Positions 11,763 through 41,600 of a DNA stretch of 64,000 nt are shown piece by piece. The position numbers and the translations under genes are program-made. Within the stretch, counting starts at the first letter, position 1. The number at the start of each line of letters is the position of its first letter. The stretch is from Oculina patagonica (Eukaryota). Below the pieces are notes generated by a model. That model had not been told where the DNA came from, searched no databases, and was given only the letters and a program-made list of their open reading frames with translations. The stretch covers positions 29,512,001-29,576,000 of the forward strand of contig NC_135760.1 of the NCBI RefSeq assembly GCF_052425735.1, read 5' to 3'.

Positions 11763-13607
11763 GCACCGGGAGCAAGTGTCCTTTATATCTAGGACAATAA
11801 AATTTTGAATCATATAACGCCTCTTCTGCGTGAACCAATGCAGTTTTAATAGTAGTGTTAACTTTACTCTATAAAGTGGGGACTATAAAAGAAAATTGTA
11901 TGGTCACGGTCAACACCTGAGAAAGTATGCAAGAATTCCAAAGTACTTAATGTCCTCAAAATGTTTTCATTTCCATTCAAATTCTCTATATGGAAAAGCG
12001 GAATTGAACAAAGTTTCCGTGAACTGCAATGATCCCAAGTGCTTATAAACACGATAAATATGCGAGCAAAAGCCTTTTAACTCTTCCCAGTCAGAATCGT
12101 CCACAAAATTTGGCAGAGTTCAATAGAAGGTCCTCCATCTTCGATTTTGGGGTCATTTGGCGACGTCACGAAATTTCGCGCCAAATCGGTCAGCGGCCAT
12201 TTGGCGCATTCTCGAGACATGCTGTCAGATTACACAAATTATTCTCAAACTCATTAATAATTGCCAACGAGACAGCCGAGCCAAGAGGCGAGGCTGTCGA
12301 GGCGGCAGAATCATAGAGCCGTGTGCGTATGAGTGTATAGGCAGAGAAAATCTTAAGTTCTGCGTAAGGGACTTTTTTTTTACCATATTTGGGTGTAAGT
12401 AAACCCCATATTTGGGTTGTATTGTTCTTCCCAACTGGTTTCCAGTCTCTCACTCCTTGCTAGAGAGCAAATGACCGTCCACGCGGCTCGCTGTTAAAAT
12501 TTTCAATGTGGTCATTCATCCCTTTACCGATAAATACACCTTTAGGGAATTATAAATCGAAAGAGAATACCCTACAGAATATTCGACCGCCGAAAAAATG
12601 AACATCAAGGTCTTCAAAGCGATGAAATAATCTTTCGACTTTGGAGTGCTTTGATTTACGATCGAAGAGAGACATGAAAATCAAATGCTGAAGTCGGGTA
12701 AATGCTTCCTTTTAGTGTTGATTGTGTTTATAGTAATTGTTTGACCGATGATTTATTCTAAATCAAATACCGTTTATATTTTATTTGGCACGCATTTTCG
12801 CTCCGCGTAGGAATAACATCAATACAAAGCGACGCTCACTAAAATTACTGCATGTCATACACACAAGAAAGTCAAAAGTTTTTTGCTTCTCACGGCAAAT
12901 GTAATGTTAACTTGAATAAAAATTTTGTCTCCAAATAATCCTTGACCGTTCAAGTTTTGTTTTCTGTTCAAATTTTTCAAGGTTTGCGTAACTGAACATG
13001 ACACTTCGCATGCGAGACTGAAATCTGACCCGTGCATTACTGTCTCTGATTACTGAAAATTATTTTTAAAAAAGCATCTTAGCAGTTTTGATTTTGGGAT
13101 TTGATTTATAAGAAGTTCTCGAAATGCAACTATCCCTTTTGTGGACGGAAACATTTTAACCATCGCGTGTTGTATTTAAAAAACAAAAAACCTCATTTAT
13201 TAATTAATTATTGCCTACATTTTGTGACATTTTAACGTTAAACAGAATTTAAAGATTTGTCAAGAGTTATCAATCTGTCAAACCCGTAGCATGCGTAGCA
13301 GACATATGTCTACGTTTTTTAGTGTGTTTAAAAGAGTGCGCGATCGCGAGAATACGCGCGCTGGAACTGACTACGGCGCCTGCTACGCAGGCTATCAAGC
13401 CTGTGTCACTTATGAACACCAAAGAAATAGCACTTTTTTCGCATATTACCTAAATACAATTTACCATATTTTGGTCATTTCAAATATAGTTCTATCAAAA
13501 ACCATTCAATATCTGTTCTTATGAACAAACATGAGTATTTCGCTCGTTGGCACTTACCGATAGGTACAACTAGTTTATCGAGTTAAAACAAAGAAAATCC
13601 GGTCTTA

Positions 13608-15854: not shown

Positions 15855-16774
15855 TGCTCTATTTGTTTTTAGCTGATTAACTGTTAATTGCTGAACAAAC
15901 GTGCTGTCTGAATGAATTGTCACTTAGTCACGGTATTTCTCAGCATGTAGTGCTAGTTTTGAGCAACGGGTTTCCACTTATTTGTGGTAATAAACAACTG
16001 TAATATAAACAATTTCTCGAACATTCTCTGATTCGTGAAGTGAAGTGAAGTGTGTTAAGCTGTGATGTGGACCATACAATTCTTTTCAAATTCTTTCCCA
16101 TTATTAACCTTTTTCTATTGTGTTGGCACGCCTTAGCACTGACTGTTTGAGTACAAAGCAATTTGCATGTTTTATTCCCTCCTTTGACTCGTCAACTGAT
16201 GCAATTTATTATTTATTCATTTATCCAGGTACATCTAATTAGCCAAAGCTAGTTTAAATACAGCCCTGACTAAAAGTAAAGTATTAGTACCGTATTTATT
16301 CGATTAAGCGCTCAACCTTGAATGAGCGCCCACCTCGAAAAAGGGCCCACCCTGTTTAATATTTCGGGAGTGGATTTACCCCGACGCAGTAAAGAGTCGA
16401 GTAAGCGTCCACGTGAGTGAGTTCAAACATCTTTGGAACTTCGTTTAAGTCTTTGGGAAAGTTCGTTTATTTTTGGAAAGGTTTGAAAAACGATCGGAAT
16501 CGTTCGTATGGCCTTCGAACAACAATTGGAGAAATTTTCGGAAATCTTCGGTCTAGGAACTGCTCAGAAATCGAAAAGTTGCTGGAACGGAAAAACGTTT
16601 CTCCAAATATGAAAACCTGCCGAGTATTTTTGGGACAGTCTTAACCCCCCCCCCCCCCCCCAAAAAAAAAAAAAAAAAAAAAACGTTCAAAAACGCTCCG
16701 CCGCCTCTGATACACAGTGCGAAAATATTTCCTTTTTTTACAAATACACAGTCATAAATAAGTTATAAATATGA

Positions 16775-16810
<36 letters not shown>

Positions 16811-19800
16811 GCTGTTGTTGTTTTTCCGAAGAAAAGAAGGCTAATGCTCATTTTAACAAGAACTGCAAGCAGTTTATAATCGTGCGGGTAATGTTTGACC
16901 TCCTGACCTCTTTCAGTGCTTTGGCTTAAAGGCACGGCACCGCACAGTAAAATATTTAGAAAAGCAGTCACTTGAGAAACACACAAGTCGTGTTTGCGTT
17001 TGTCACGGAGTGAACGTGACATGAATTTCCTTTACCACGTCATCTTTTTCTTTTTAAAACCACATGCCTAGCCGGAAAAATGCCTGCTTACGCATGCAAA
17101 TATTTATTTTGTTCCAAATGTTCAATAAAATAACCCAAACCAGTTCATTTAAAAGAAAGCCAAATCACGCCAAAATAAAGAGTAGACTATTAAGGCCATC
17201 CCATTGTATTTCTCCGTTTAGCGTCTTCCGACAAGCTTTTGGTAATTCCGCGATGACGTGTATCCCGTGCTTTGACACATTCTTGCTGAGCTTGCAACTT
17301 ACATTTCGATAACGTTTCGATTCTCAAAATACCGTAAACTCAAAACAAAAATTGGGATATCCAGAAAATAAGTCGTTGTTTTGCAATATTTAACACGTTC
17401 CGGCTAAATTGTACGACTTGTACTTGCTCCGAGCCAAACGCTTGAGTAACACAACAATAAGTATTTCACACAAACAGAGCGCAGAGTATTCAAACAGAAA
17501 ATAGGTGAATGATTATTTATAGCTACAAGCGAGAGATCGCGTGACATGGGTCTGACGTAGTGGTAGTTTTAAATAGCTTGGACATGTCCAAGCGGTCTTT
17601 GTTTTCTCTATGTGATTATATTCAGCCCTCTCTTCTTGTAAAATATGGAATGAAACAAAATTATACATTTCAGAGAGCAGAGTGTTCATGTTAAACGCGA
17701 GTGATCAGCTGATCGCTATTAAATATTAAATCTTGCGTGACCGTGACAGAAGAGCCGGCTCAACAATGCTATTGCATCACAGCTCACTGCGGTTTTGAAA
17801 TCTGTCATGACCTAATGGTTCTTTATTTAGCTTGCACCACTTGTACATGTCAAACTGCGTTGTTTTGCGGTATTCAGTACAGTCCGGGTATGTAATACGG
17901 CGTTTTGTTTTCACTCTGAGTCAAACGCTTCAATAAAACAGTTCTTCCTCATAAAATTTCTTTAAAGTGGAGTCTGGCTGAAAAAAATGCACTGCAGTGA
18001 CGCTTGCAGTTTCCGGCGAAGACAAAATTGCGTGAATGACGTAGTGTTTACTACGAAAATAGCTTTCACAATTTGAATATTTAGTACTCGCTCTGAGACA
18101 AACGTAAGAATCTCCAAAAAGATGTTTCAGATTGATTTTTTTTTTTCAAGATAAGACCAAGAAATGTTTCGAAAAGTATTTGAATTTCGAAAGTTTTGAA
18201 GCCGTACAAATTGTGCGTGTCTGAGCCGTGGAATTTATTGCGTTCACAATAATAGTTTGGACATGGCAAAGAAAGCAAGATTTTGCAATGCGAATCTCCA
18301 GTACTCGCTCCAAGTCAAGACTTAAATGCCGGACACAAAAATATATATATATTTCGCGTTTAACAGAGCATAGAGTACTCGTAAAATTAGACGGGAATGA
18401 ATTTGTAACACAGCTTCCAGGGAGTGAACATTAAAACTTGTACGATTTGAACGTAATATTTCGCAAGTAATGAAAACTTGCGTGACCGTGACCAAGGGAT
18501 CGGCTGGGCCGCGAGGTTCTGGAACGATTTACCGACAAAAAAAAAAAAAAACGACAAAATCTGACACAGATTATGAATCGGGCCCAGGCCCCGCCCGATT
18601 AATGAGCTCATTCATTAAAGCACTTCAATATACCCACATATCATTCCTTTCATTCAAACAGTTTAACTATAGAGTGCAGCTGAGTGCTGCACGGCTTCCT
18701 TCCCAGTCTCCAACATGGTTGCCGTGGAAACCTTCATTCTGATGGAAACACTATGATACAGATTTAGCCTTCCACAATAGCCGTCTCTCTGTTCCCTGCT
18801 GGCCGGCATGAATATCATTAGTAACAGATTATCACGTGACAGCTATCAAACCTTCGATTTATAGTTTCCCGACTAAATTGAGAAAGTGAGAAAGCCTTTT
18901 GAAGGTAGGTAAAATATATATTTTGTTTCACACCATAGAAATTTTTTTGGAAATTAGAAATCGTTGTGAGAGCAAACGATGTTTCCAACACATAAAGCTC
19001 TAGGGAAACAGACACGCAAGCGGATCACGTAATAAGTTCTGCTACCGAGTTTGGTCAAAAATCTGTAACGAAAAAACCGGAGTTGGTTTGTGATCATTTT
19101 CTTCGTTCGTTTTGATCGAAATTTACCCGCAAGTCTATGTAAGTTTTATTCACGTTTGGCCAACCAATGCTAGTCGACGCATTCAACTCGGTCTTGTTGT
19201 TCTGTTGCGGTGTTTTGATAAATCCGACAGCTGAAGCGTCAACTGTAAGATTGCCTGTACCGGCGAGCAGGCTTGGGAGTCCGTCTAGCTACATGTACAG
19301 AAGGTACGTGGGGTGAGTCCGGCTAGGCGCAACTTCAGTATACTTTAAAACATGTTTTGATATTAAGGACTAAGCGTTCCCTTGGCCCTAGTAGAACTAC
19401 CTTCTAAGAATGCCGCGCAAGTACTAGTTGACTGTACGTGTTCGCTCAGTGAGCGCTGTATCCTGATCGGGATGGCTTTTCGGTGCTGTTGGTAGTGGAC
19501 GATGCCAAAACTGATTCTAGAACTATAATAACGGAACTGTAACTAGCGATCGCGTGACCGTGAGATTTAATCATGTTGTGCTTTGAATTCTCAGTGGTAC
19601 CAAGTGCTCTATGTGTCTAAAGATACATGAAGAAATACACTGAGTCAGGCTGGTGATCCCTGAATTTTTCTGTGGAGGATCTTTTGGTTGGTTGAGGTCT
19701 TCAGTGACTTTCGTCCCTTCGGTAGAACTTGAGAAATCGATACTCCACATCTCCAAGATCTCCCAACTGTAAAACTGCTTAGCCTTGTCTTATTGTTAGT

Positions 19801-29600: not shown

Positions 29601-32600
29601 AGGAAAGAGAATGAGCAAATGAATGTGTCCAAGTTTTTTTAAATTGGGAGGTAATGAGATAAGCAGTGACATTTTGTATGTGTATGTGTACACAAAATCC
29701 AAAAAAACTATACCGACCTGTCTGTGTGCTGCTGCCCAAGCAAGGGGTGTCAGACCTGTTTTATCCACAGTATTAACATCTGTTCCTACAAAACACGAGG
29801 AAAATACTGACTGAGGTGTTTGAATTACAGACCCTGGCCTTTGGTAACAGTATACATTTCAGGGGACATGGCCTTGTGGGGGTTGGGGGGTGGCATCCCC
29901 TATAAAGATTTTGTGGCTGCTCATCAGAAAATTTCAAAAACACCCCTAAAAGGTAACACGAGGACCTCATTTTGTGGGGTGTCCCAAAACCATTTTCACC
30001 ATAAGAGGTACCAATAATAAAATAACAAATTAAGTGACACAGGCAATTTGATGACTGGATGACTGTTTTCGAGTAGATAATTCAGGACTAAAAAGTCATT
30101 CGTATAACAAATACAGTTACTGCTCCCATCATTTTTTAGATCAATACCCTTGAAGGCCCATTAGAGGTACTGCGACAACTGTAGCAGCGTTTTAGGAATA
30201 CGCATCCTTAGCAGTACCAATCAAAAATTTTAACCCCTAAAAGGTATGACAACCACCCCTGTTAATTTTATAGGGGAGTTCCCCCCAGAAGGGGGGCATG
30301 GCTCCTGATGAGTGAACATTGACATTGGCCAGCCAAGTTAGCCACATCCAAGACGGAAATCATTCTTGAAAACTTAAGCTCCTGTTCATAATTTAATTTA
30401 ATGATATTAACTTTAGTTAATTTAGGTTAATGAATAAATGTACAATCGCCAGCGTATTATATTTCACGATCACATTCGCGTCGATCGCTACATCGTGTTA
30501 GGCTAGTTTCGTTTTCTCTCGTTTGTATTTTCACATTTACGATGCCCGGTGGCAAAGCAAAACGAAAATCCAAGTGTCCTGGCTGCCACACAGCCCACTC
30601 TCAACATTACTTCGGACCGCCAGGCCCTCAGTGTTCCGGCGAACAAGAAAGTGAACAAGACGGGGAAGATATTCAGGGCGCCATGGCGGATCCGCCCCAT
30701 AAAAGCCCCAAAACCACAGCCAAAACCGAGGATATTTCTGCACTCCTGTCCGCGGTTCGAAGTTTATCAGACCAAGTACACGACTTGGCCCTGGACAACA
30801 AAGCGATCAAAGACCAGCTGGCACAACAACAGATTACAGAGCCAAAAGTCAACCCAACGAGTCCGGCGCCCAAAGATGCGTCTATTCCTGTCTCCAACAA
30901 CCTCGCCGCCGCTGCACAGGATCGCTCACGTACCAAGCTTGTCGAAGCCATCACTTGAGGTAAGTTCGTTCACTTTATCGAGCTTCTTCGCCTCGAGGGA
31001 GATTTGCATGCGAGCGAAGGTCAGCAAGTGATTATCACGCCCGAAGGCCAACTGTTTACAAAACGTGCTCGACCCCAACGCGACATTTCCTCGTTCGACT
31101 TATGGCTCGCCGCTTGGTTCCAGTTCGAAAAGATTCTGGTAAACGTACACCCTAACCGCTACTCTGAGCTTTGTGCCTATCGTGAAGTCATTCATGCCGC
31201 CAGTAGGAAATTCCGCTGGTCCTCTGTTTACTCCTATGATGTCCGTTTCCGCACGAAACTCGCGAATGGAGAAATCGCCCGCTTCGATCAGCTGGATCAA
31301 ACACTTTATACCACCATCCTCGATGCTACAGCCCTCCGCTCTGACGCCAGGCAGTGCGCTCGCTGTAAAGGATACGACCATTTGGCCCGCGAGTGTCCTT
31401 TTCGTTCGCAATCCGCGTTGGAAAAAACAAAGGAGACGCCGACGCAGGAGGCCTGGAAACGAGAACAATGGTTCCACGATGGAAAGGAGGGATGTAATCT
31501 CTTCCAGCGCAATTCCTGCTATTTTGGAAACGCCTGCCGACGGGCACACGTCTGCAAAAGCTGCAAAGGTAATCACCCCTTGGCAGATTGCTCTGTCGCT
31601 ACCTAAGCTCTGGTCCCCGTTCCACGTAGCCACCTGGAGGGAAGCGTTACGAAATCACCCTGATCGTCATTTCGTGGACGGACTCCTTCACGACATTGAC
31701 AACGGTGTGGCACTTGGCTACGAGGGACCAAAAATTTCGCAGTGCCACACGAATCATTTATCTGCGACTACGAACAGTCACTCTGTGATTCATGAACTCT
31801 CACGTGAACTTAACATGTACAGAAAAGCCGGGCCTTTTCTGACACCTCCCTTTCCTGATTTTGTGGGTTCGCCACTGGGTGCAATTCCGAAGAAACACTC
31901 GAATCCTCCACGTTACCGTCTAATTCATGATTTATCGTGGCCTGCGGGCCGATCAGTTAATGACTTTATCCCGCCGGATAAATTTACTTGTCAATACGAC
32001 ACCCTTGACCGCGCCATCTCCTTTATCAAACAAGCCGGTCCAGCAGCACAAATGGCTAAACTAGATTTGTCGGACGCGTATCGTCACATTCTCGTTCGCC
32101 CTCAAGACTGGCCTTTACTAGGCTTTACCTGGCCCATATTTGTGGATGGGTCTTTACGTACGGGATACTTCTTCGACATGTTCCTCCCCTTTGGCGGTCG
32201 CAGTGCTCCGGCACTCTTCCTTCGTTACGCGGACGCTCTTGCCTTCGTCATGGCGGACAGAGGTGCCTCCACAGTTTGGCACTACCTCGATGACTTTTTT
32301 ACATGCGGCCCCGCCTCCCCCTCCAACCAATGTCGACACAACCTAGATGTCATGGTTTCTTCCTGTCAATTACTAAACTTCACACTAAACCAAGACAAAC
32401 TCGTCCATCCGACAACCTGTCTTACCCTCCTAGGCATCGAGCTGGACTCTGTTGAATGCGTTGCCAGAATTGACGCCACACGGTTGGCCGAAATCCTTGA
32501 TCTAGTATGCTATTGGTCAACTCGTACAAAAATCACCAAACGGGAACTGCAGTCCCTGCTGGGGAAACTAAACTTCGTCTGCAACGTTTGTCGTCCTGGA

Positions 32601-35600
32601 CGGACCTTTCTATCACGCATGCTAAACCTTTTGTCTAGGGTACATCAACCCCACCATCATGTATGTCTCACCAACGCGTTCAAAAAAGACTTAAAGTGGT
32701 GGGAGTTGTTTCTCCCAACGTGGAATGGTAAGAACTTCTTCTTCGACGACCACTGGAGCAGTAACACTCTGTTGGAATTCTACACCGATGCCAGCAATCA
32801 GGCATTCGGGGCTTACTTCCAAGGGGCGTCCCTTAAGAAAAAGTCTACCCTGTAGAAACCCTGTGGCAGCCCAGTAAAATCCTGTTTCCAGCCCTCTTTA
32901 GTTATTTACAAGGCTGAAAACTAGACGTGGCAGGGTTGTAGCAGGGCTGCAACATAACCTGAGTTAAGACAAGCAGAGCTGTGACAGGGCTGTAAAGATT
33001 AAAAGCAAAGTACAACAGGGCAGAAACAGGGTTGTAACATGACTGGGAAGATATACATGCATAACAACAGGGTTTAAACAGGGCTGCCAAGTCATACATA
33101 GACAGTAGAACAGGGTTGCTAAATGGCTGTAAGTTATAACACTGCACAATAACAAGCAGGGCTGTGTTGTAAGTGGGTTCTAGCAGGGCTGTGAAATTTA
33201 TTAAAGGGATTTAAGCTAAAAAAAAGAAAAGAGCATAATGATCGTTCTTATAAACAAGTCGTGGCATAAAAGCTTGATAAGTCTCACATCCGTGTACACA
33301 TGCATCTGCTCGGTTAGCGACTTGCTTGAGGGCCGACAAGTAAGTTAACGCAAATCAAACACATGACCGAAAAGTTTAAAAAACCAATTTTGTTTGTATT
33401 GGCAACATAGCAATGACAAGTTAAAACTTATAAAAAACAGCAAAAAGAAAAATGTTTAAGCTAATTAACATAGCTGAACACGGCTATCAAAGTTTCATTA
33501 TTTAATTTAGTGTTTCTGTAAATATCGATTGCTTCCACAAGTTCTGTACCCTTTGTCGTATGAAATTCAGAGGGTCTTTGTCAAACGTAAAAGTTAAATG
33601 ATAAAATAGAACCTCTCTTCAGCTTACCATTTACTAAGTATTCCTTATTCCGGTATCATTTATAGGATCGCTGTTCCCAATCATCCATTGAACCGGGATT
33701 GAAGAGTGTGATAAGCGATACTTGCGTCGATGAAATAATTTCCAGTGCCTTCGTTAATTCTTAATTTGATTCCTATGAAAACTATAGCTTTCAAATTTAT
33801 AGAAATATCATTAAAGTTCGGATTATTTTGCAGCTGAAGTGCTTCCATGTCCGCTGCAAAAAGAAACACACATCAAGGACGGTATTTTGCTTTGCTCAGT
33901 GCTAGTCTCTCAGCGGTCAACCTGGAAGTGAGGTTGTCACGTCACACAGCGAAATTTCCTTTGGGTTCATCACGCAATCTTTCATCCTGCGGTCATTTTT
34001 GCAGAAACCTTCTTGCAATTTTTACCGGATTTTTTTTTAGAACGGTTACAGTTAATAGACGTCTTAATTTGGAAGAATTATACAAACACCGTGCAAGCTA
34101 GGCGACAGAATTGGCGACAGAAACGTCAACAGAGTAACCAGCTTCTTGTTTTTGCCCGGTACCCGGGTACCCTGAGTAGTTTTGACTTCTCGACCCAGAT
34201 TTCCCTCGGGATGAGATCCATCCAAAATGGCGGCTCGTTCATTGGAGATCGCTTTGTAGACCATTGTAGGAAATAACAGATCGATTTGGAAATAGCATGC
34301 CGATTAAGTTTACAGGATGTTGTCAATTCAAGGAAGAGAAGACCGTGGTGATAGTATTAAAGCTAAGTTGAAGATTTTATTGATCGTTTTACCAAGGTTG
34401 CACATCGTTCGTGATCTGATTCTGTTATTGTTCCCATCGAGTACACCTGAAGCTATTTGATTAGGCGCAGAGAACGTCTGTACTTTTCGATGTCTTGTAA
34501 AGTTTTAATCTTTTCCCATTTATATCTCTTATTGATTCAAGCGTTGAAGAGTATAGAAGTTTATGTAGTATATATAGTCAAAATAAAACTGCAGCGTTTC
34601 TAGCTTGTTTTAAACATGATTAAATAAACTTAATGATATAAGCTTATGTTCACTGTACAATTTTAAAGCCAAGCAGACAAACAATCATCAAGACATGGAA
34701 ATTGATTTCTGTAGCTTTTAAAAATAATTATTGTCTTAATATTTTCTGTTCCAGAAAACTTTTCAAAAGACAGCCACAAGGCAGGAAGCTCGTGATCCTG
34801 ATTTTGACCTAACAAAAGACACAGAAAGTAGTAACTCTGATCTTGTAAGTCGTTTGTTTAAAATTCTACTTAATGTCACATCAAAGTTTGCCTTTATTAC
34901 CTGGTATTAATTTATGTGCAATAAAAAGCTGAGATTGGCAAAGAACAGTTGGATACCATTATTTACTCCTAAATCTATTGATAAATTATTAGAAATGTAC
35001 TTTTGACTGTAACAAAATTGCAAGGTCAAATTATAGCACATCCTAAGTGTAAAAACCTTCAAAATCACCAGTTACTTAAAAAAGTAAGGACCTGGAAGAC
35101 AAAGAACTCAAAACAACGTAGAACAGGAAAACACGCGCGGGCGGGGGGGGGCGGGGGGGGGGGGGGGGGGCCGGGGCGGGGGGGGCGGGGGGGGGGGAGA
35201 CGGGAAGGGCGCGCGGGGAGGAGGAGGAGGGGCGGCCCAAACACACGGAAAAAGGAAACTATGTCACAGTTTCTTACAACAAACTAAACCTCAAATTATG
35301 TAGTATACGAGCTAAAGAGATTTGAAATTCCTCAAGTGAAAAAGAATGCTTCCAAGATTCATCAAGGCATGCAATGTTTTTTATGAAAGATGAGGGGAAC
35401 CTGATTCTTTCCTCTTCAAATTAAACATCTATTTCAATTTCTGCTTTTTTTCAGGATGATGACATTGAAGAGAAGACAAATGAAGTTGCCCACTACACTA
35501 AAAATAAACATATAAGTGATTACGAGAAACAAAACTTAAGAAATATTCGACAAAATCAAGAGAAGATCAAGGAACTTGAGCTAAACATTTTGGTAAGTAT

Positions 35601-38600
35601 TATAGTTAAAGCACATTTAGACAAAAGTATATACATCATATAGTATCTATAACCACTCTTTATTTTACATGGGAAACTGGTTCCTGAGAAAAAGGAGAAA
35701 TCCAAATTTTGCAATATGAAGCAAATGGTCTCTCTTTTATCAATGTAGGGGAAACCTGGAAGTCAACTCTCTGCTCCAAAGAAAAAACCTGAAAAGCCAC
35801 AACTAGCTAAAGCTGCCACTGTAAGTAATTTTCATACATTAATACTAGAACACAGTCATGTATTATAAATAATAGCGAAAGTATGTTCCTTTTTTAAGTT
35901 GTAGACTTTATATTGGTTTTTATGTTGACAGAAATGCTTGAAATGTGATTTAACTTTTTGGTGACTTAAATCTGAACAATTAATGATCATACCTGTCCAG
36001 CACAATAACAAATTAAGAACATTTCAATCTATTTAAAGTGTCAATTTTCCTTAATAATCAGACATAATTATAGTATTGCCAGAGTGTGCACTGTCAAATG
36101 AATACAAAACTGTTTTGTAACAATTTGACACTTACCAGCAATTTTTCGCAGAAAAGTTTTGGATTTTGAAGGCAAGTGCGTGAGGGATTCCTAGTTGAAA
36201 GCAGGCAATGGCAATTTTTACTTTTTCTCTTGATTACATATCCAGATAAGGTAATATGTTGTCCTGTTCATTCTGTTAGGAACCAGCCAATACCTTAAGT
36301 CCAGGCACTTCAAGGAATTCTCCCACACAAGTGAGTTTCACCAAAAACTGCTCTTGTGTTTATGTTATTAATTTCCTTCATTTTTAAAATTTATACTTCC
36401 TCCTTTGCATTAACTTCCTTAATTCAGGAGTAAATTTTTTTCCAATTTGCATTACTGACTAAGTCACATTAATTTCAAATACCTTGATCAAATTTTATTT
36501 TCCTTTGATAAAGTTAACAACTGTATTTACTTTCAATCCACAGCCACATTCTCAAGCAGCTAGTTCAGACTCACAGCAGTCTCCTGCTGGGAATGTCACC
36601 ATCATGAAGGTTAGAAACTACTTTTAATATATATATTTTTAGCAGCTCAGTCGGCCGAAGCAGTGGGTAGGAAGAGGGGTCACACAAAGAGCACAGACAA
36701 AGAGAGGAAGCGACGAGGGAGAAGAAGGAGGGAGGGGACCCGAAACGCAACGCCCGCCGCACCGCCGCCGGAGCAGGCCCACCACTGATCGTCATCGAGC
36801 GACGTGGAGAGGCAGCAGACAGAGAGAAGAGTGGCGCATCCGCGGGGAGGAGGGGCAGGGGCAAGAGCGCAGCCCCCGCGACCGGGGCCACGCACGGAAG
36901 CACCGGCGAGCCGACGCCGAAACGGCCGCGAAAAAGGCAGCACCGAAGGGGAGCACGACGAGACACCGCAACGCCACCGCGCGACCCGCCCCCGACGCCA
37001 CCGGCGGGAGAGCCGCCGGACGCCGGGGGGACCCGAGCGGGGGGCGGGGCGAGAGACGGGGGAGGGGACGAACCGAGAGGCTATGGACGGGCGAGAACAA
37101 GGGTTCGTGTTCGTCGAAAACAGAGGTCTCGTCAAGGAGAACAACAGAGTGGGAGCAGCAGGCGTGCCAGCGCCCCGCCAGAGAGGGGAGGAGGAGCCCG
37201 AGGGCAGCAGGAAAGTGAGGGGCCGCAAGCCAACCAGGCAACACCCAACAGGACAACACCCAGCACCCCAAGCCACCCCAAAGAAAAACTCCTGCACGCT
37301 TAGCGTGCCTATGTTTTGCTTAGTCATCATTACATGTTAGACAAGTAGCTTTGTAAAATAAGTACTTCAATGTACAGTTGCACTAATCAAAGCAAGAGAA
37401 TATGTTACCTGAGTCACTCTTACGCAGTAAGTTCCCTTAACACATTCGCAAAGCTTGCTTGCTATCCCTGGTCTAAAATATGAGCTGTGAATATTGCATT
37501 CTTTCCTTGCTCTGATTCTAGTTGCTGTGACTGTTTATATTTTACTTTGAATAATTATAGTAGTGATTTTGATTTTCATTTCCTTCTTTCTCATTTTTAA
37601 GAGTGAAGTTAAACTTGTGGAGCTGGTCTCAGGAATGGGAATTTTTCTCAGGGCAGACAAGCTCTCCTTGGCAATAGAAAAATCGAAGGAGATACCAACA
37701 AGGCTCCTTCGTACATTAATGGACATGTTTTTTACCCCAGAAGTAATGGCTGGAAGTACTGCCAAGGGCAGTTTAAAAAGAGGGCTTGATGCTCTGGACC
37801 CTCAAACAATGGAAGCTTTATACCGTGAGTATTGTTACTACTATTTTCTTTTCATTTTTATACCTGCCAACTCTCACGCCTTCGCCTGCGAGGTGAAAAC
37901 TTCGATCTCATGCCAACTCACGCTTACGCACCAATTTCTCACGCCTAGTCAATGTACTGGGATTGGGATATGTTCGCAACATCTTCGGAATCGCAACATC
38001 TTGGACGTCTTCGGAAAACTTCGTACATTTTCTTATTGGCTTCGGAAATCCTGCCACTCTCAGGATAAAAATCTCACGCCTTTGACCCAGAAAAAGTTGG
38101 CATGCAGGTATACATTATAAAAAAGGCCAAGTAAAAAAATGAAAAGATTAGTATTAAGCATTCAACACATATATATGTATAGAATGCATATGTATGTATT
38201 GACATTATTTAGTTGGGCTGAAATGGAGTCCTCTAATACCATACCACCCTCATGTATACCATTTTTAAGCCTTGTCTAAAATTGCAAGACATTTAATTTA
38301 ACCTTTACTCAATCTACATCCAACTTTTACAATCATGCAAAGCTCATATAAATATATCTAATTATCTCCACAGGATTTGTCATTGCTAAACACCCCGGAA
38401 AGACGATTTACAAGGAGTTGGTGAATGAGGCAAATGATAAATGTTACAGTTACAGAAGGAAACAAAAACAGAGCAAATGACATTTTGAAACTGACCTCAG
38501 TATACATTAAACTCCACAGAACTAATTATAATCACACATTTCTAGATATTTCCAGCTCTTTTTGGCCATAATTTGTTAAGAAAGCTATTTTAATAATATT

Positions 38601-41600
38601 ATTGTGCACTTCAATTATGCATGTAACTTAATAATTTTAAGCCAAAAAAGTCAAATATAAAAGCATTTGAGTTTGAAATGAACACTGTAACGTAGTAAAA
38701 AAATTGTTGACTTTTACTTGATAGTTGATATTATAAAAATTGTGAATGTATGCTCATTTATCAAAGCAAGGTTAAAATATATATTTCTTTTGGCAATTCA
38801 TACTCTGGTTGATTTTCAAGCTGTTGATTTGTGCAAGTTTAGAATCTTTTTGTACTATTGCATGACATTAGTACAGGGTTGCACTAGCCATGTAAACTAG
38901 CTCCTGCAGGGCTGTTTCATGGGGTCTACAGAGCCTGCTGGTTTAAAAACTGTTACAGGGCTGTTACAGTTTGGCTACTTGGTAGAAACAACCTTGCTAA
39001 CTGTGCCAATTTACGAGCTGCAACAGGGCTGTCCTGGACAAGCCTCAGAACAGCCTGTTACAGGCTTGGTACAGGGCTGCCACAGGGTTATTGTTGTCAT
39101 TAAATAGGCAATACCATGACAGGGCTGTTACAGGGTTGCTGCTTGGTAGAAACAACCTTGCTAACTGTGCCAATTTACGAGCTGCAACAGGGTTGTAACA
39201 AGGTCCTTTTTACACCCCTGTTACAGGGCTCCCAGGGGGTTTCTACAGGGTAGACTTTTTCTTAAGGTGGCTCTTCGACACCTTCAAAACTCATGGCATT
39301 CCCACGCGCTGATCAATCGCCTTCAAGGAGCTATTTGCAATCATCGCAGCGCTAACCAAGTGGGCACCACGACTCACTGGCAAACGTATCCTCTTCCACT
39401 GTGACAATGAGGCCGTCGAACATATCCTTCAGAGAGGCCGCAGCGTGTGTCCCCACATCATGACCCTCGCTCGTTATCCATTCTTCCTCTGTGCACATTA
39501 TAGCATAGAAATTTCTGCTGTACATATCCCAGGTGCCCAGAATAATCGTGCTGATGCCCTGTCTCGTTTACAGATCAGTCGCTTCAGATCCTTGACACCA
39601 GACGCCGACCCATATCCAACTCCAGTACCAGAGATCTCCCTGACTCCCTTCCGATGAAGGTCAACTACTATTTCCAGCATGGACTGGCTCCTTCTACTCA
39701 GCGTACCTACAGCGCTCCACAGCGTCAGTTCATAGCATTCTGCACTCAGCACCAACTCCAGGCCCTGCCGGCTTCGCAGTACACGCTCCAATTGTTCGCA
39801 GCTCATTTGGCCCAACGCCTCAAGCCCCAATCCATTCCAGTCTACCTCGCGGCAGTTCGCGCACTCCACATAGCCCACGGGTTCGACAACCCCCTGAAAG
39901 ACACCTTACAGCTGAAACAAACTCTACGGGGCATCTCCCGTGTTCACGGCGAACCACCCACACAAAAGCTACCCATTACGTTTGACATCTTGAATTCCAT
40001 GCGCCCACTCATTAATATCAGCCTCCATGACGACCTGGTATGCTGGGCGGCTATGGTCATCGCACATTTCTTCCTGCTTCGCTGTGGCGAATTCACGGTC
40101 TCCCAGCCAAATGCCTTCTCTCCTGCCTACCACCTCACGGTCGCCGACCTACAACTCAAGACATCCTCAGAGGGCCACCAGTACGTTGCGCTACGCCTTA
40201 AGACCTCAAAAACTGACCAATTTCGTCGTGGCCACGTCTTATATGCGGGCCACAGCAGCCACCATATCTGTCCTGTCTGCATCGCGTCTCAACTTCTCGC
40301 CTTGTACAATGGCAGCAATACTCCTGCAGACTCCACCCCTTTGTTTGCTCTAGATGACAGATCAGCTTTATCCCGTCCAGTTCTTCTGAAATTTGTATCC
40401 CAGCAACTGCGTCTACTCGGTTTTGACCCCTTAGCATACGGAGGCCACAGTTTTCGCGTAGGAGGGGCCACCTCTGCAGCATCTGCTGGACTGAACGACT
40501 ACGCAATCAAAACACTTGGCCGCTGGTCATCAGACTGTTACCGTAGATATATACGTACCCCTATCTCCAGTATATTACAGCTTTCCTCCAAAATAGCCAA
40601 ATCAGGACACTCCCAGTACTGTTATGCAAACCCTTACGATATTTAATTCCTATTATTATTAGCACTTTTATTATTTTTTTTCCCTTCTCTTATTATCCGT
40701 CTATTATTTTCATTACTTCTTGGGTCCTTAGCTTTTTTTGGGCAGTTTATAGGTTGACCCAGAAGTCCCTATCAATAAAGTCTGCCCACGTTTTTACCAA
40801 ACACTTTCGTTTTATTGTTGTGTGCATGTAATTAAATGATATTAACTTTAGTTAATTTAGGTTAATGAATAAATGTACAATCGCCAGCGTATTATATTTC
40901 ACGATCACATTCGCGTCGATCGCTACATTGTGTTAGGCTAGTTTCGTTTTCTCTCGTTTGTATTTTCCCATCCCTCCCTCCCAGGCAGTTTATAGGTTGA
41001 CCCAGAAGTCCCTATCAATAAAGTCTGCCCACGTTTTTACCAAACACTTTTGTTTTATTGTTGTGTGCATGTAATTAAATTACATTAAATACAGACCCCC
41101 CCCCCCCCCCTGCTAAAAGGTACTAACGCAACTGTGGAATATGAAATGGAAACTCCTAAGAGATGTCAAAACATGATTTCAACCTCTAAGAGGTACAAGA
41201 AGCATCCCCACCATTGCCAAAAAAGTTACCTCTCCCCCCTGGGCAACAGAGACTTCCCAGAGCTCCTACCATGGCACCCTGTGTCACTAGTCACCAGCAC
41301 ATCCTTCAACTACCGGTAATACAACCCTAATGGAAATTGATGGGGCAGCACTTCTCTTTCTCAGGAATATAGCAACTGAAGTGGCCTACAGAGACCAGTA
41401 AATATGCCAAAATAAAGCAATCTCATTAGTTTTGTTAAGAAACAATTCCTTGTCTCTCAATCTCGGTCTAGAATCAGTAGATCCAGAATCAGTAGATTTT
41501 TGGACCGTTGTAATAATGTCAGCAAACACATAGTTAGTAGAGCTATGCCTAACAGGACCAATTAATCCCATATTTAAACACACCTTTGTCAATTTCTTCC

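Follow-up and report, generated by a model that had tools for sequence, protein, structure and literature searches.

The maize transposon En/Spm, a CACTA element, encodes a TNP2-type transposase of the Transposase_21 family and a second, TnpA-type protein, the two arising as alternative splice forms of one transcript, and it has terminal inverted repeats (TIRs) that begin CACTA and end TAGTG, accompanied by arrays of short subterminal motifs. It makes a 3 bp target duplication, and its dSpm/I derivatives are non-autonomous, carry internal deletions and are moved in trans. Mirage elements, from animal hosts, make 2 bp duplications. For the CMC (CACTA/Mirage/Chapaev) group duplications of 2–5 bp and, in most cases, CA..TG termini are described, and EnSpm, Mirage, Chapaev and Transib are listed as having a D/D/C-x2-C/H-x3-H/E-type signature (PMC12730594); Chapaev elements have 3–4 bp duplications and invariable CAC..GTG termini (PMC4079192). 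In PIF/Harbinger elements, too, one pair of TIRs encloses both a DDE transposase gene and a second gene for a DNA-binding accessory protein (PMC12730594). CMC elements, two-gene transposons (En/Spm, Harbinger) and deletion derivatives are each already known. Here we describe an element at positions 32830–39267 of a 64 kb stretch of Oculina patagonica DNA (contig NC_135760.1; this whole stretch is referred to as the window), which carries a spliced gene ending in a BEN domain and is very probably a non-autonomous copy, with its transposase deleted, from a two-gene family of CMC transposons of metazoans.

The 6.4 kb segment from C32830 to G39267 is a real cut-and-paste transposon. Its inverted arms (32831–32877 and 39221–39267) are 47 nt each and 91% complementary, with the outermost 31 nt perfectly paired as had been recognized in an earlier note made from the letters alone, and a 28 nt TIR probe finds two sites in the window, both at the element ends, where none is expected. 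The left end was set at C32830, one base further out than the arm, because of the alignment with the relatives described below; in the window copy and in all of these relatives the termini are 5'-CCCTTA(A/G)..(C/T)TAAGGG-3'. The dense subterminal ACAGGG(C/T)TG repeats of the earlier note also stand, as the window contains 12 ACAGGGYTG matches (0.72 expected; none of 100 shuffles reached 12), 11 of which are inside the two ends, at 32984–33118 and 38873–39195 and every one on the + strand. The CAGGG core is present in 12 and 13 copies in the two terminal 700 nt versus 0.8 per kb in the element interior, and several cores are paired as doublets with a spacing of exactly 11 bp. Two cores within the left TIR are in the opposite orientation to the array motifs and the element ends are therefore not mirror images, an asymmetry also kept in the relatives.

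There is no transposase open reading frame (ORF) inside the window element, and with the family transposase as query tblastn returns no match to the element up to E 10 and none to the window at E 1e-3, in agreement with what the earlier note had reported. Relatives were obtained from a cluster of 77% identity, with members located in long contigs from ENA assembly ERZ25067546; three independent loci there have a BEN exon 5–7 kb from a 940-aa Transposase_21 ORF on the opposite strand. These loci contain three complete elements (L013, L014 and L015; 12,879, 13,487 and 15,103 bp) that start with CCCTTAG and end with CTAAGGG, and which are flanked by TA/TA, AA/AA and GA/GA, corresponding to 2 bp target duplications in all three. 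The two genes are divergent, one an intronless gene for the 940-aa DDE transposase and the other a spliced gene ending in BEN and running toward the right end, and there are ACAGGGYTG arrays inside both ends. Compared pairwise, the transposase genes of the three elements are 97.6–98.8% identical and their BEN-side ends 99.0–99.7%, and the elements were therefore recently active in that organism. Other contigs were less informative: those with the closest BEN exons (L001–L003, L011) are too short for element structure, and TIR scans of JGI metagenome contigs gave 0 matches with a first pattern and five with a second, of which L020 is the only true end.

The window element and the transposase-bearing elements have their ends in common. 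The left end of the window copy is 80% identical to the transposase-side end of the relatives over 257 nt, starting from position 1, and the right end matches their BEN-side end through to its final base, with 74.5% identity over 318 nt; motif positions (19, 30, 102, 113, 156, 187/188) correspond nearly one for one. By the Repbase-style rule, which for a non-autonomous element looks at the duplication length and at whether termini align from the first position, the window copy shares its ends with the transposase-bearing elements; their first 30 nt have three differences, looser than the single mismatch in 11, only at positions 7–8, that Repbase itself allows. The BEN exons are 75–82% identical at the protein level (82% for the last exon), and the exon with the SDYE motif is conserved. 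The earlier note had offered the element as either a deletion derivative or a partner element of a two-component system, by analogy with CACTA/EnSpm; the analogy holds, since a Transposase_21 (TNP2-type) DDE transposase is present in full-length relatives whose ends and BEN gene are the same, and of the two options it is the deletion derivative, of a two-gene family, that is the best reading.

More distant copies have the same components. In a family from the sponge Halichondria panicea (L004, ~5.2 kb) a transposase remnant is present on the - strand and BEN on the + strand, with ACAAGGTTG clusters at both ends; its BEN has ~35% identity with the window protein, and its transposase remnant ~30% with the family transposase. 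Two further copies (L021 and L022) have only the BEN-side part of an element. In L022 another Transposase_21-type gene (12481–13140; 30% identical to residues 720–940) abuts the truncated BEN-side fragment, and that organism therefore has several CMC families side by side.

The 940-aa ORFs of the relatives match PF02992 with 38.6 bits (cut-off 28.6) and also have a weak match to DUF1258. In an alignment of 14 transposase sequences D350, D438 and C457-x2-C460 are invariant, and H673-x3-H677 and E697 nearly so, such that the CMC catalytic signature is present in the autonomous relatives and not in the window copy, where there is no transposase. A zinc-finger-like module, H245-C248-C251-C263, is likewise invariant and is positioned upstream of the catalytic core. 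Homologues with 30–47% identity are found in a hemichordate, corals, molluscs, an echinoderm, a hydrozoan, thrips and fishes, and nearly all of them have PF02992 together with PF06869. The duplications of the three relatives are within the 2–5 bp of the CMC group, with that of the window copy being imperfect (GT versus TG), but the termini are CC..GG and not 5'-CA..TG-3' (CACTA, or CAC for Chapaev). We regard these ends as a departure from CMC and not an exclusion, because CA..TG is stated to apply 'in most cases' (PMC12730594).

In comparison with the described systems, this family shares with En/Spm the transposase type, the TIRs with short subterminal motif arrays, and a second element-encoded protein, and the window copy resembles dSpm/I in being an internally deleted, non-autonomous derivative. 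It differs in its CCCTTAG..CTAAGGG ends and 2 bp duplication, in having two separate divergent genes, in the BEN domain at the end of the second protein, and in that the window derivative keeps its accessory gene. The animal hosts, the short duplications and the weak match to DUF1258 (a Caenorhabditis family) are reminiscent of Mirage and Chapaev, although the 2 bp duplications and CC..GG ends are unlike those of Chapaev, and no BEN partner gene is attributed to either lineage in searchable papers. The likeness to PIF/Harbinger is in the two-gene organization, whereas its transposase is of an unrelated superfamily, the accessory protein has a Myb/SANT fold instead of BEN, and the duplication is 3 bp.

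A BEN-like domain at the end of the gene, as proposed earlier, is encoded by the last two exons. Exon 6 alone matches Pfam BEN (PF10523) with only 12.6 bits (E 0.17), below the gathering score of 23.2. An exhaustive HMMER search with this exon recovered 48 relatives, from 86% identity downward and all of them short ORFs on eukaryotic contigs, of which three pass the gathering score (P0008, P0015 and P0018, with 24.5, 24.0 and 23.9 bits respectively). The spliced window protein aligns to P0018 across both BEN exons and the whole domain (E 3e-24), and a family profile that includes both window BEN exons matches the solved NAC1 BEN structures (8yzs, 7bv9) at E 3e-10 to 4e-10 over profile positions 23–121, with marginal matches to BEND6, BANP and BEND3. 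BEN is an established sequence-specific DNA-binding domain, and the transposon protein belongs to the same fold family as the host factors NACC1/NAC1, BANP, BEND3 and BEND6, matching NAC1 over ~100 residues. The host factors are single-copy genes with BTB or other partner domains, whereas the transposon gene is inside a mobile element, has a helix with the SDYE motif and low-complexity linkers upstream of BEN, and exists as many diverged copies.

The gene has seven exons (Table 1) and not the eight or more predicted earlier, the first of them starting at or before 34297. An RNA contig of 1089 nt (run X1, word depth 164) covers 34297–34844 and then the downstream exons with 0 mismatches, and its five GT-AG junctions (34844>35455, 35592>35749, 35820>36280, 36330>36544 and 36609>37602) confirm the corresponding introns, as the earlier note had proposed to check. 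The spliced frame has 247 open codons from 34740, with the first in-frame ATG at 36604 (codon 138) and 14 other ATGs upstream of it in the observed transcript; the BEN gene of the relatives begins with a 50-codon first exon that has an ATG and a GT donor. With no in-frame ATG before codon 138 a full-length protein from the window copy is doubtful, and what this copy makes is probably no more than a 111-aa protein with BEN alone, if it makes any protein, barring an unseen 5' exon spliced onto 34755. The window element itself is an ordinary non-autonomous derivative that is probably coding-defective.

Two other parts of the gene were compared. The helix motif upstream of BEN, S-x-YE-x4-R/K-NI-x2-N-x3-I-x-E-x-x-L (window 35455–35592; L013 7570–7692, - strand), is 54% identical over 24 residues and may be a protein-interaction helix. 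The first exon of the relatives (L013 9052–9216, - strand; MAKFCVVLFDVD..VRWSKNITYEGSIVGEAG) resembles a small Tudor/chromo-like barrel and has no Pfam match and no significant counterpart in the window; Pfam searches with the SDYE-motif exon and with the first two BEN-gene ORFs of the relatives similarly gave no match.

The BEN exons of the window copy and the relatives have a ratio of nonsynonymous to synonymous substitution (dN/dS) of 0.06–0.11, with synonymous sites saturated (proportion of synonymous differences, pS, 0.63–0.67), and the ratio is 0.27 for the closest copy, L003; judged by these comparisons, the gene is under purifying selection. The left terminal 250 nt is still ~83% identical to the relatives, with 55 of 56 motif-core positions conserved, versus 152 of 193 at other positions. 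Conservation of the ends, and above all of the motif cores, is much stronger than that of synonymous sites; they are accordingly under selection, the pattern to be expected of protein-binding sites. The designation of the BEN gene as cargo in the earlier note does not fit its conserved position or the selection on it, and it is the resident second gene of the family, a partner gene next to the same end in each case and not captured cargo.

Autonomous members of the family are 13–15 kb long, and the window copy retains both ends, both motif arrays, and a transcribed and correctly spliced BEN gene, whereas ~6 kb, including the transposase, is missing. Having no transposase, such a copy would move only in trans, through the transposase of an autonomous copy acting on its ends. 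Binding of the putative BEN protein to the ACAGGGYTG doublets would have a part in building the transposition complex or in controlling it, like that of TnpA in En/Spm.

Several observations weigh against parts of this interpretation. The autonomous relatives are in the assembly of another organism (ERZ25067546) and not in this genome, and their non-coding interiors are too diverged from the window copy for mapping of the deletion breakpoints. Within the gene, the last intron (37824>38374) is not seen in RNA and has homology as its sole support, the joined frame carrying the BEN domain on exactly as in intronless homologues, and the homology of the first exon to the 50-codon first exon of the relatives is not significant by tblastn and ambiguous in a MAFFT alignment. 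The zinc-finger-like module of the transposase could itself read the element ends. Finally, the window copy does not have a clean 2 bp duplication, its left flank being GT and its right flank TG.

The insertion splits the reverse transcriptase/RNase H ORF of a DIRS-like retroelement (31173–32855, matching RVT_1 at E 9e-12), and the frame resumes after 39267. Arguing from the sequence, joining the flanks as GCGT|GG (site ..GGGGCGT|GGCTC..) would restore the retroelement frame (..YFQGAWLFDTF..), and a GT duplication would fit the window copy only on the assumption that the G run at its right junction is two G short. An empty site was sought in other copies of the retroelement, with none present in the window and with the DIRS-like element in L012 too diverged for fixing the junction.

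How the BEN protein acts admits of two main explanations. There is about an even chance, in our estimate, that it is a putative end-binding accessory factor that recognizes the ACAGGGYTG doublets, the counterpart of TnpA in En/Spm or the Myb-like protein of Harbinger; the strong conservation of the motif cores lends such binding indirect support. A somewhat less probable, but still substantial, alternative is that BEN does not bind the ends at all and acts instead on the host, for example as a transcriptional repressor, an insulator-type factor or a self-regulator by which element expression is dampened or protected, with the zinc-finger region of the transposase reading both the TIRs and the ACAGGG motifs. 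The invariance of that region throughout the transposase family suits such a division of labor, as does the presence of the CCCTGT core inside the TIR itself, and the known BEN proteins NAC1, BANP and BEND3 function in chromatin or as transcription factors. The gene is nonetheless kept beside one end in families down to 30% transposase identity, it is under purifying selection, and doublets at 11 bp suit a dimeric sequence-specific binder, although none of these points is decisive.

Two other explanations concern the nature of the element and are much less probable. The ordinary introns and transcription of the BEN gene could be those of a host gene or fragment captured by the window element (Pack-type transduplication), or of a host gene lying between chance inverted repeats, and the autonomous relatives carry a captured-looking RecQ-type helicase fragment, showing that the family picks up host DNA. 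We consider this very unlikely, as the same motif exon and the same two BEN exons are at the same distance from the same end in three autonomous elements of another organism, the gene recurs in the partial copies L021 and L022 and in the distant sponge family, and no TIR match is expected by chance; a single-copy host gene fragment absent from other TIR-bounded copies, the possibility held out by the earlier note, is contradicted by the three full relatives. The least likely explanation places the element in a TTAA-targeting superfamily (piggyBac, Kolobok) or in one making 8 bp duplications (hAT, Zisupton). The palindromic CCTTAAGG is present at both window ends and, from the window copy alone, TTAA, CTTAAG and CCTTAAGG could each be read as the target duplication. 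Both the TTAA and the 8 bp palindromic duplication were rejected, in that the same positions in the relatives are CCCTTAG / CTAAGGG, inside the TIR and with CTAA in place of TTAA, the perfect 2 bp duplications are outside of these in three of three full copies, and the linked transposase is Transposase_21.

It is a tentative further suggestion that a widespread animal lineage of CACTA-type transposons has BEN as its dedicated accessory protein for end binding, recognizing doublets of the ACAGGGYTG type as an analogue of TnpA with another fold, and that such genes are the reservoir from which the host NACC1/2, BANP and BEND regulators were repeatedly recruited; we think this possible but would not favor it. 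If true, BEN would join the list of transposon-derived DNA-binding domains, and the Codebook survey of human transcription factors lists such domains without BEN. Full-text searches of the literature, which do not extend to subscription journals or Repbase reports, turned up no paper in which BEN is connected with CACTA, EnSpm, transposase or transposon-derived domains. The family provides a natural pair of protein and target, a BEN protein and arrays of a 9 bp motif with almost invariant cores against saturated synonymous sites, such that BEN specificity and the possible transposon origin of animal BEN regulators are directly testable with it. The CC..GG ends and 2 bp duplication depart from the textbook CACTA description and are useful for repeat annotation of invertebrate genomes, in which the transposase is widespread.

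Table 1. Coordinates of the ends, subterminal arrays and BEN-gene exons of the element in the window.
Feature	Positions	Strand	Remarks
Left TIR	32830–32877	+	Transposase-side end of the family; starts CCCTTAAG; two CCCTGT cores inside
Left subterminal array	32931–33192	+	~10 (A)CAGGG(C/T)TG motifs, all on +; several 11 bp doublets
Exon 1	34059–34844	+	Transcribed; unspliced in RNA contigs; short upstream ORFs; long ORF opens at 34740 without ATG
Exon 2	35455–35592	+	SDYE..R.NI..N...I.EL helix motif; RNA junctions; motif exon kept in autonomous relative
Exon 3	35749–35820	+	K/P-rich linker; RNA junctions
Exon 4	36280–36330	+	S/P-rich linker; RNA junctions
Exon 5	36544–36609	+	Contains first in-frame ATG (36604); RNA junctions
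Exon 6	37602–37824	+	N-terminal two thirds of BEN domain
Exon 7	38374–38480	+	C-terminal BEN part (..NDKCYSYRRK..) and stop; aligns to C-terminus of BEN-positive homologues
Right subterminal array	38874–39220	+	~10 ACAGGG(C/T)TG motifs on +, one on -
Right TIR	39221–39267	-	BEN-side end; ends CTTAAGG

The helicase fragment of the relatives is downstream of the transposase (L013 13861–14313, L014 13905–14327, L015 13923–14327) and is a 140–150-aa ORF that has RecQ-like motifs I and Ia and matches only the first half of the DEAD/ResIII helicase core. Its appearance is that of a fragment captured from a host gene and not of a third gene.

The host retroelement occupies 31173–32829 and continues from 39268 to ~40600, with the RVT_1 ORF followed by an RNase H-like segment (..SIAFKELFAII..) that has an internal stop. 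Its distant relative in L012 is located at 16088–18542, with a weak Phage_integrase match.

Two blocks within introns of the BEN gene are nearly free of T, at 36638–37313 (5% T) and 35120–35240 (0% T, 69% G). Contigs of runs X2 and X3 match the flanks with 0–1 differences and skip exactly 36638–37313, and reads appear to be cut at 35127–35209; both blocks are probably assembly artefacts and not biology. The last intron of the gene contains a repeat of ~250 bp (37859–38112, with ends TATACCTGCCAAC..GTTGGCATGCAGGTATA) that is similar to miniature inverted-repeat transposable elements. Contigs from the RNA runs match it at 90–95% identity with word depths in the thousands, and from this pile-up it is a high-copy transcribed repeat, forming a third level of nesting as a repeat within a transposon within a retroelement.

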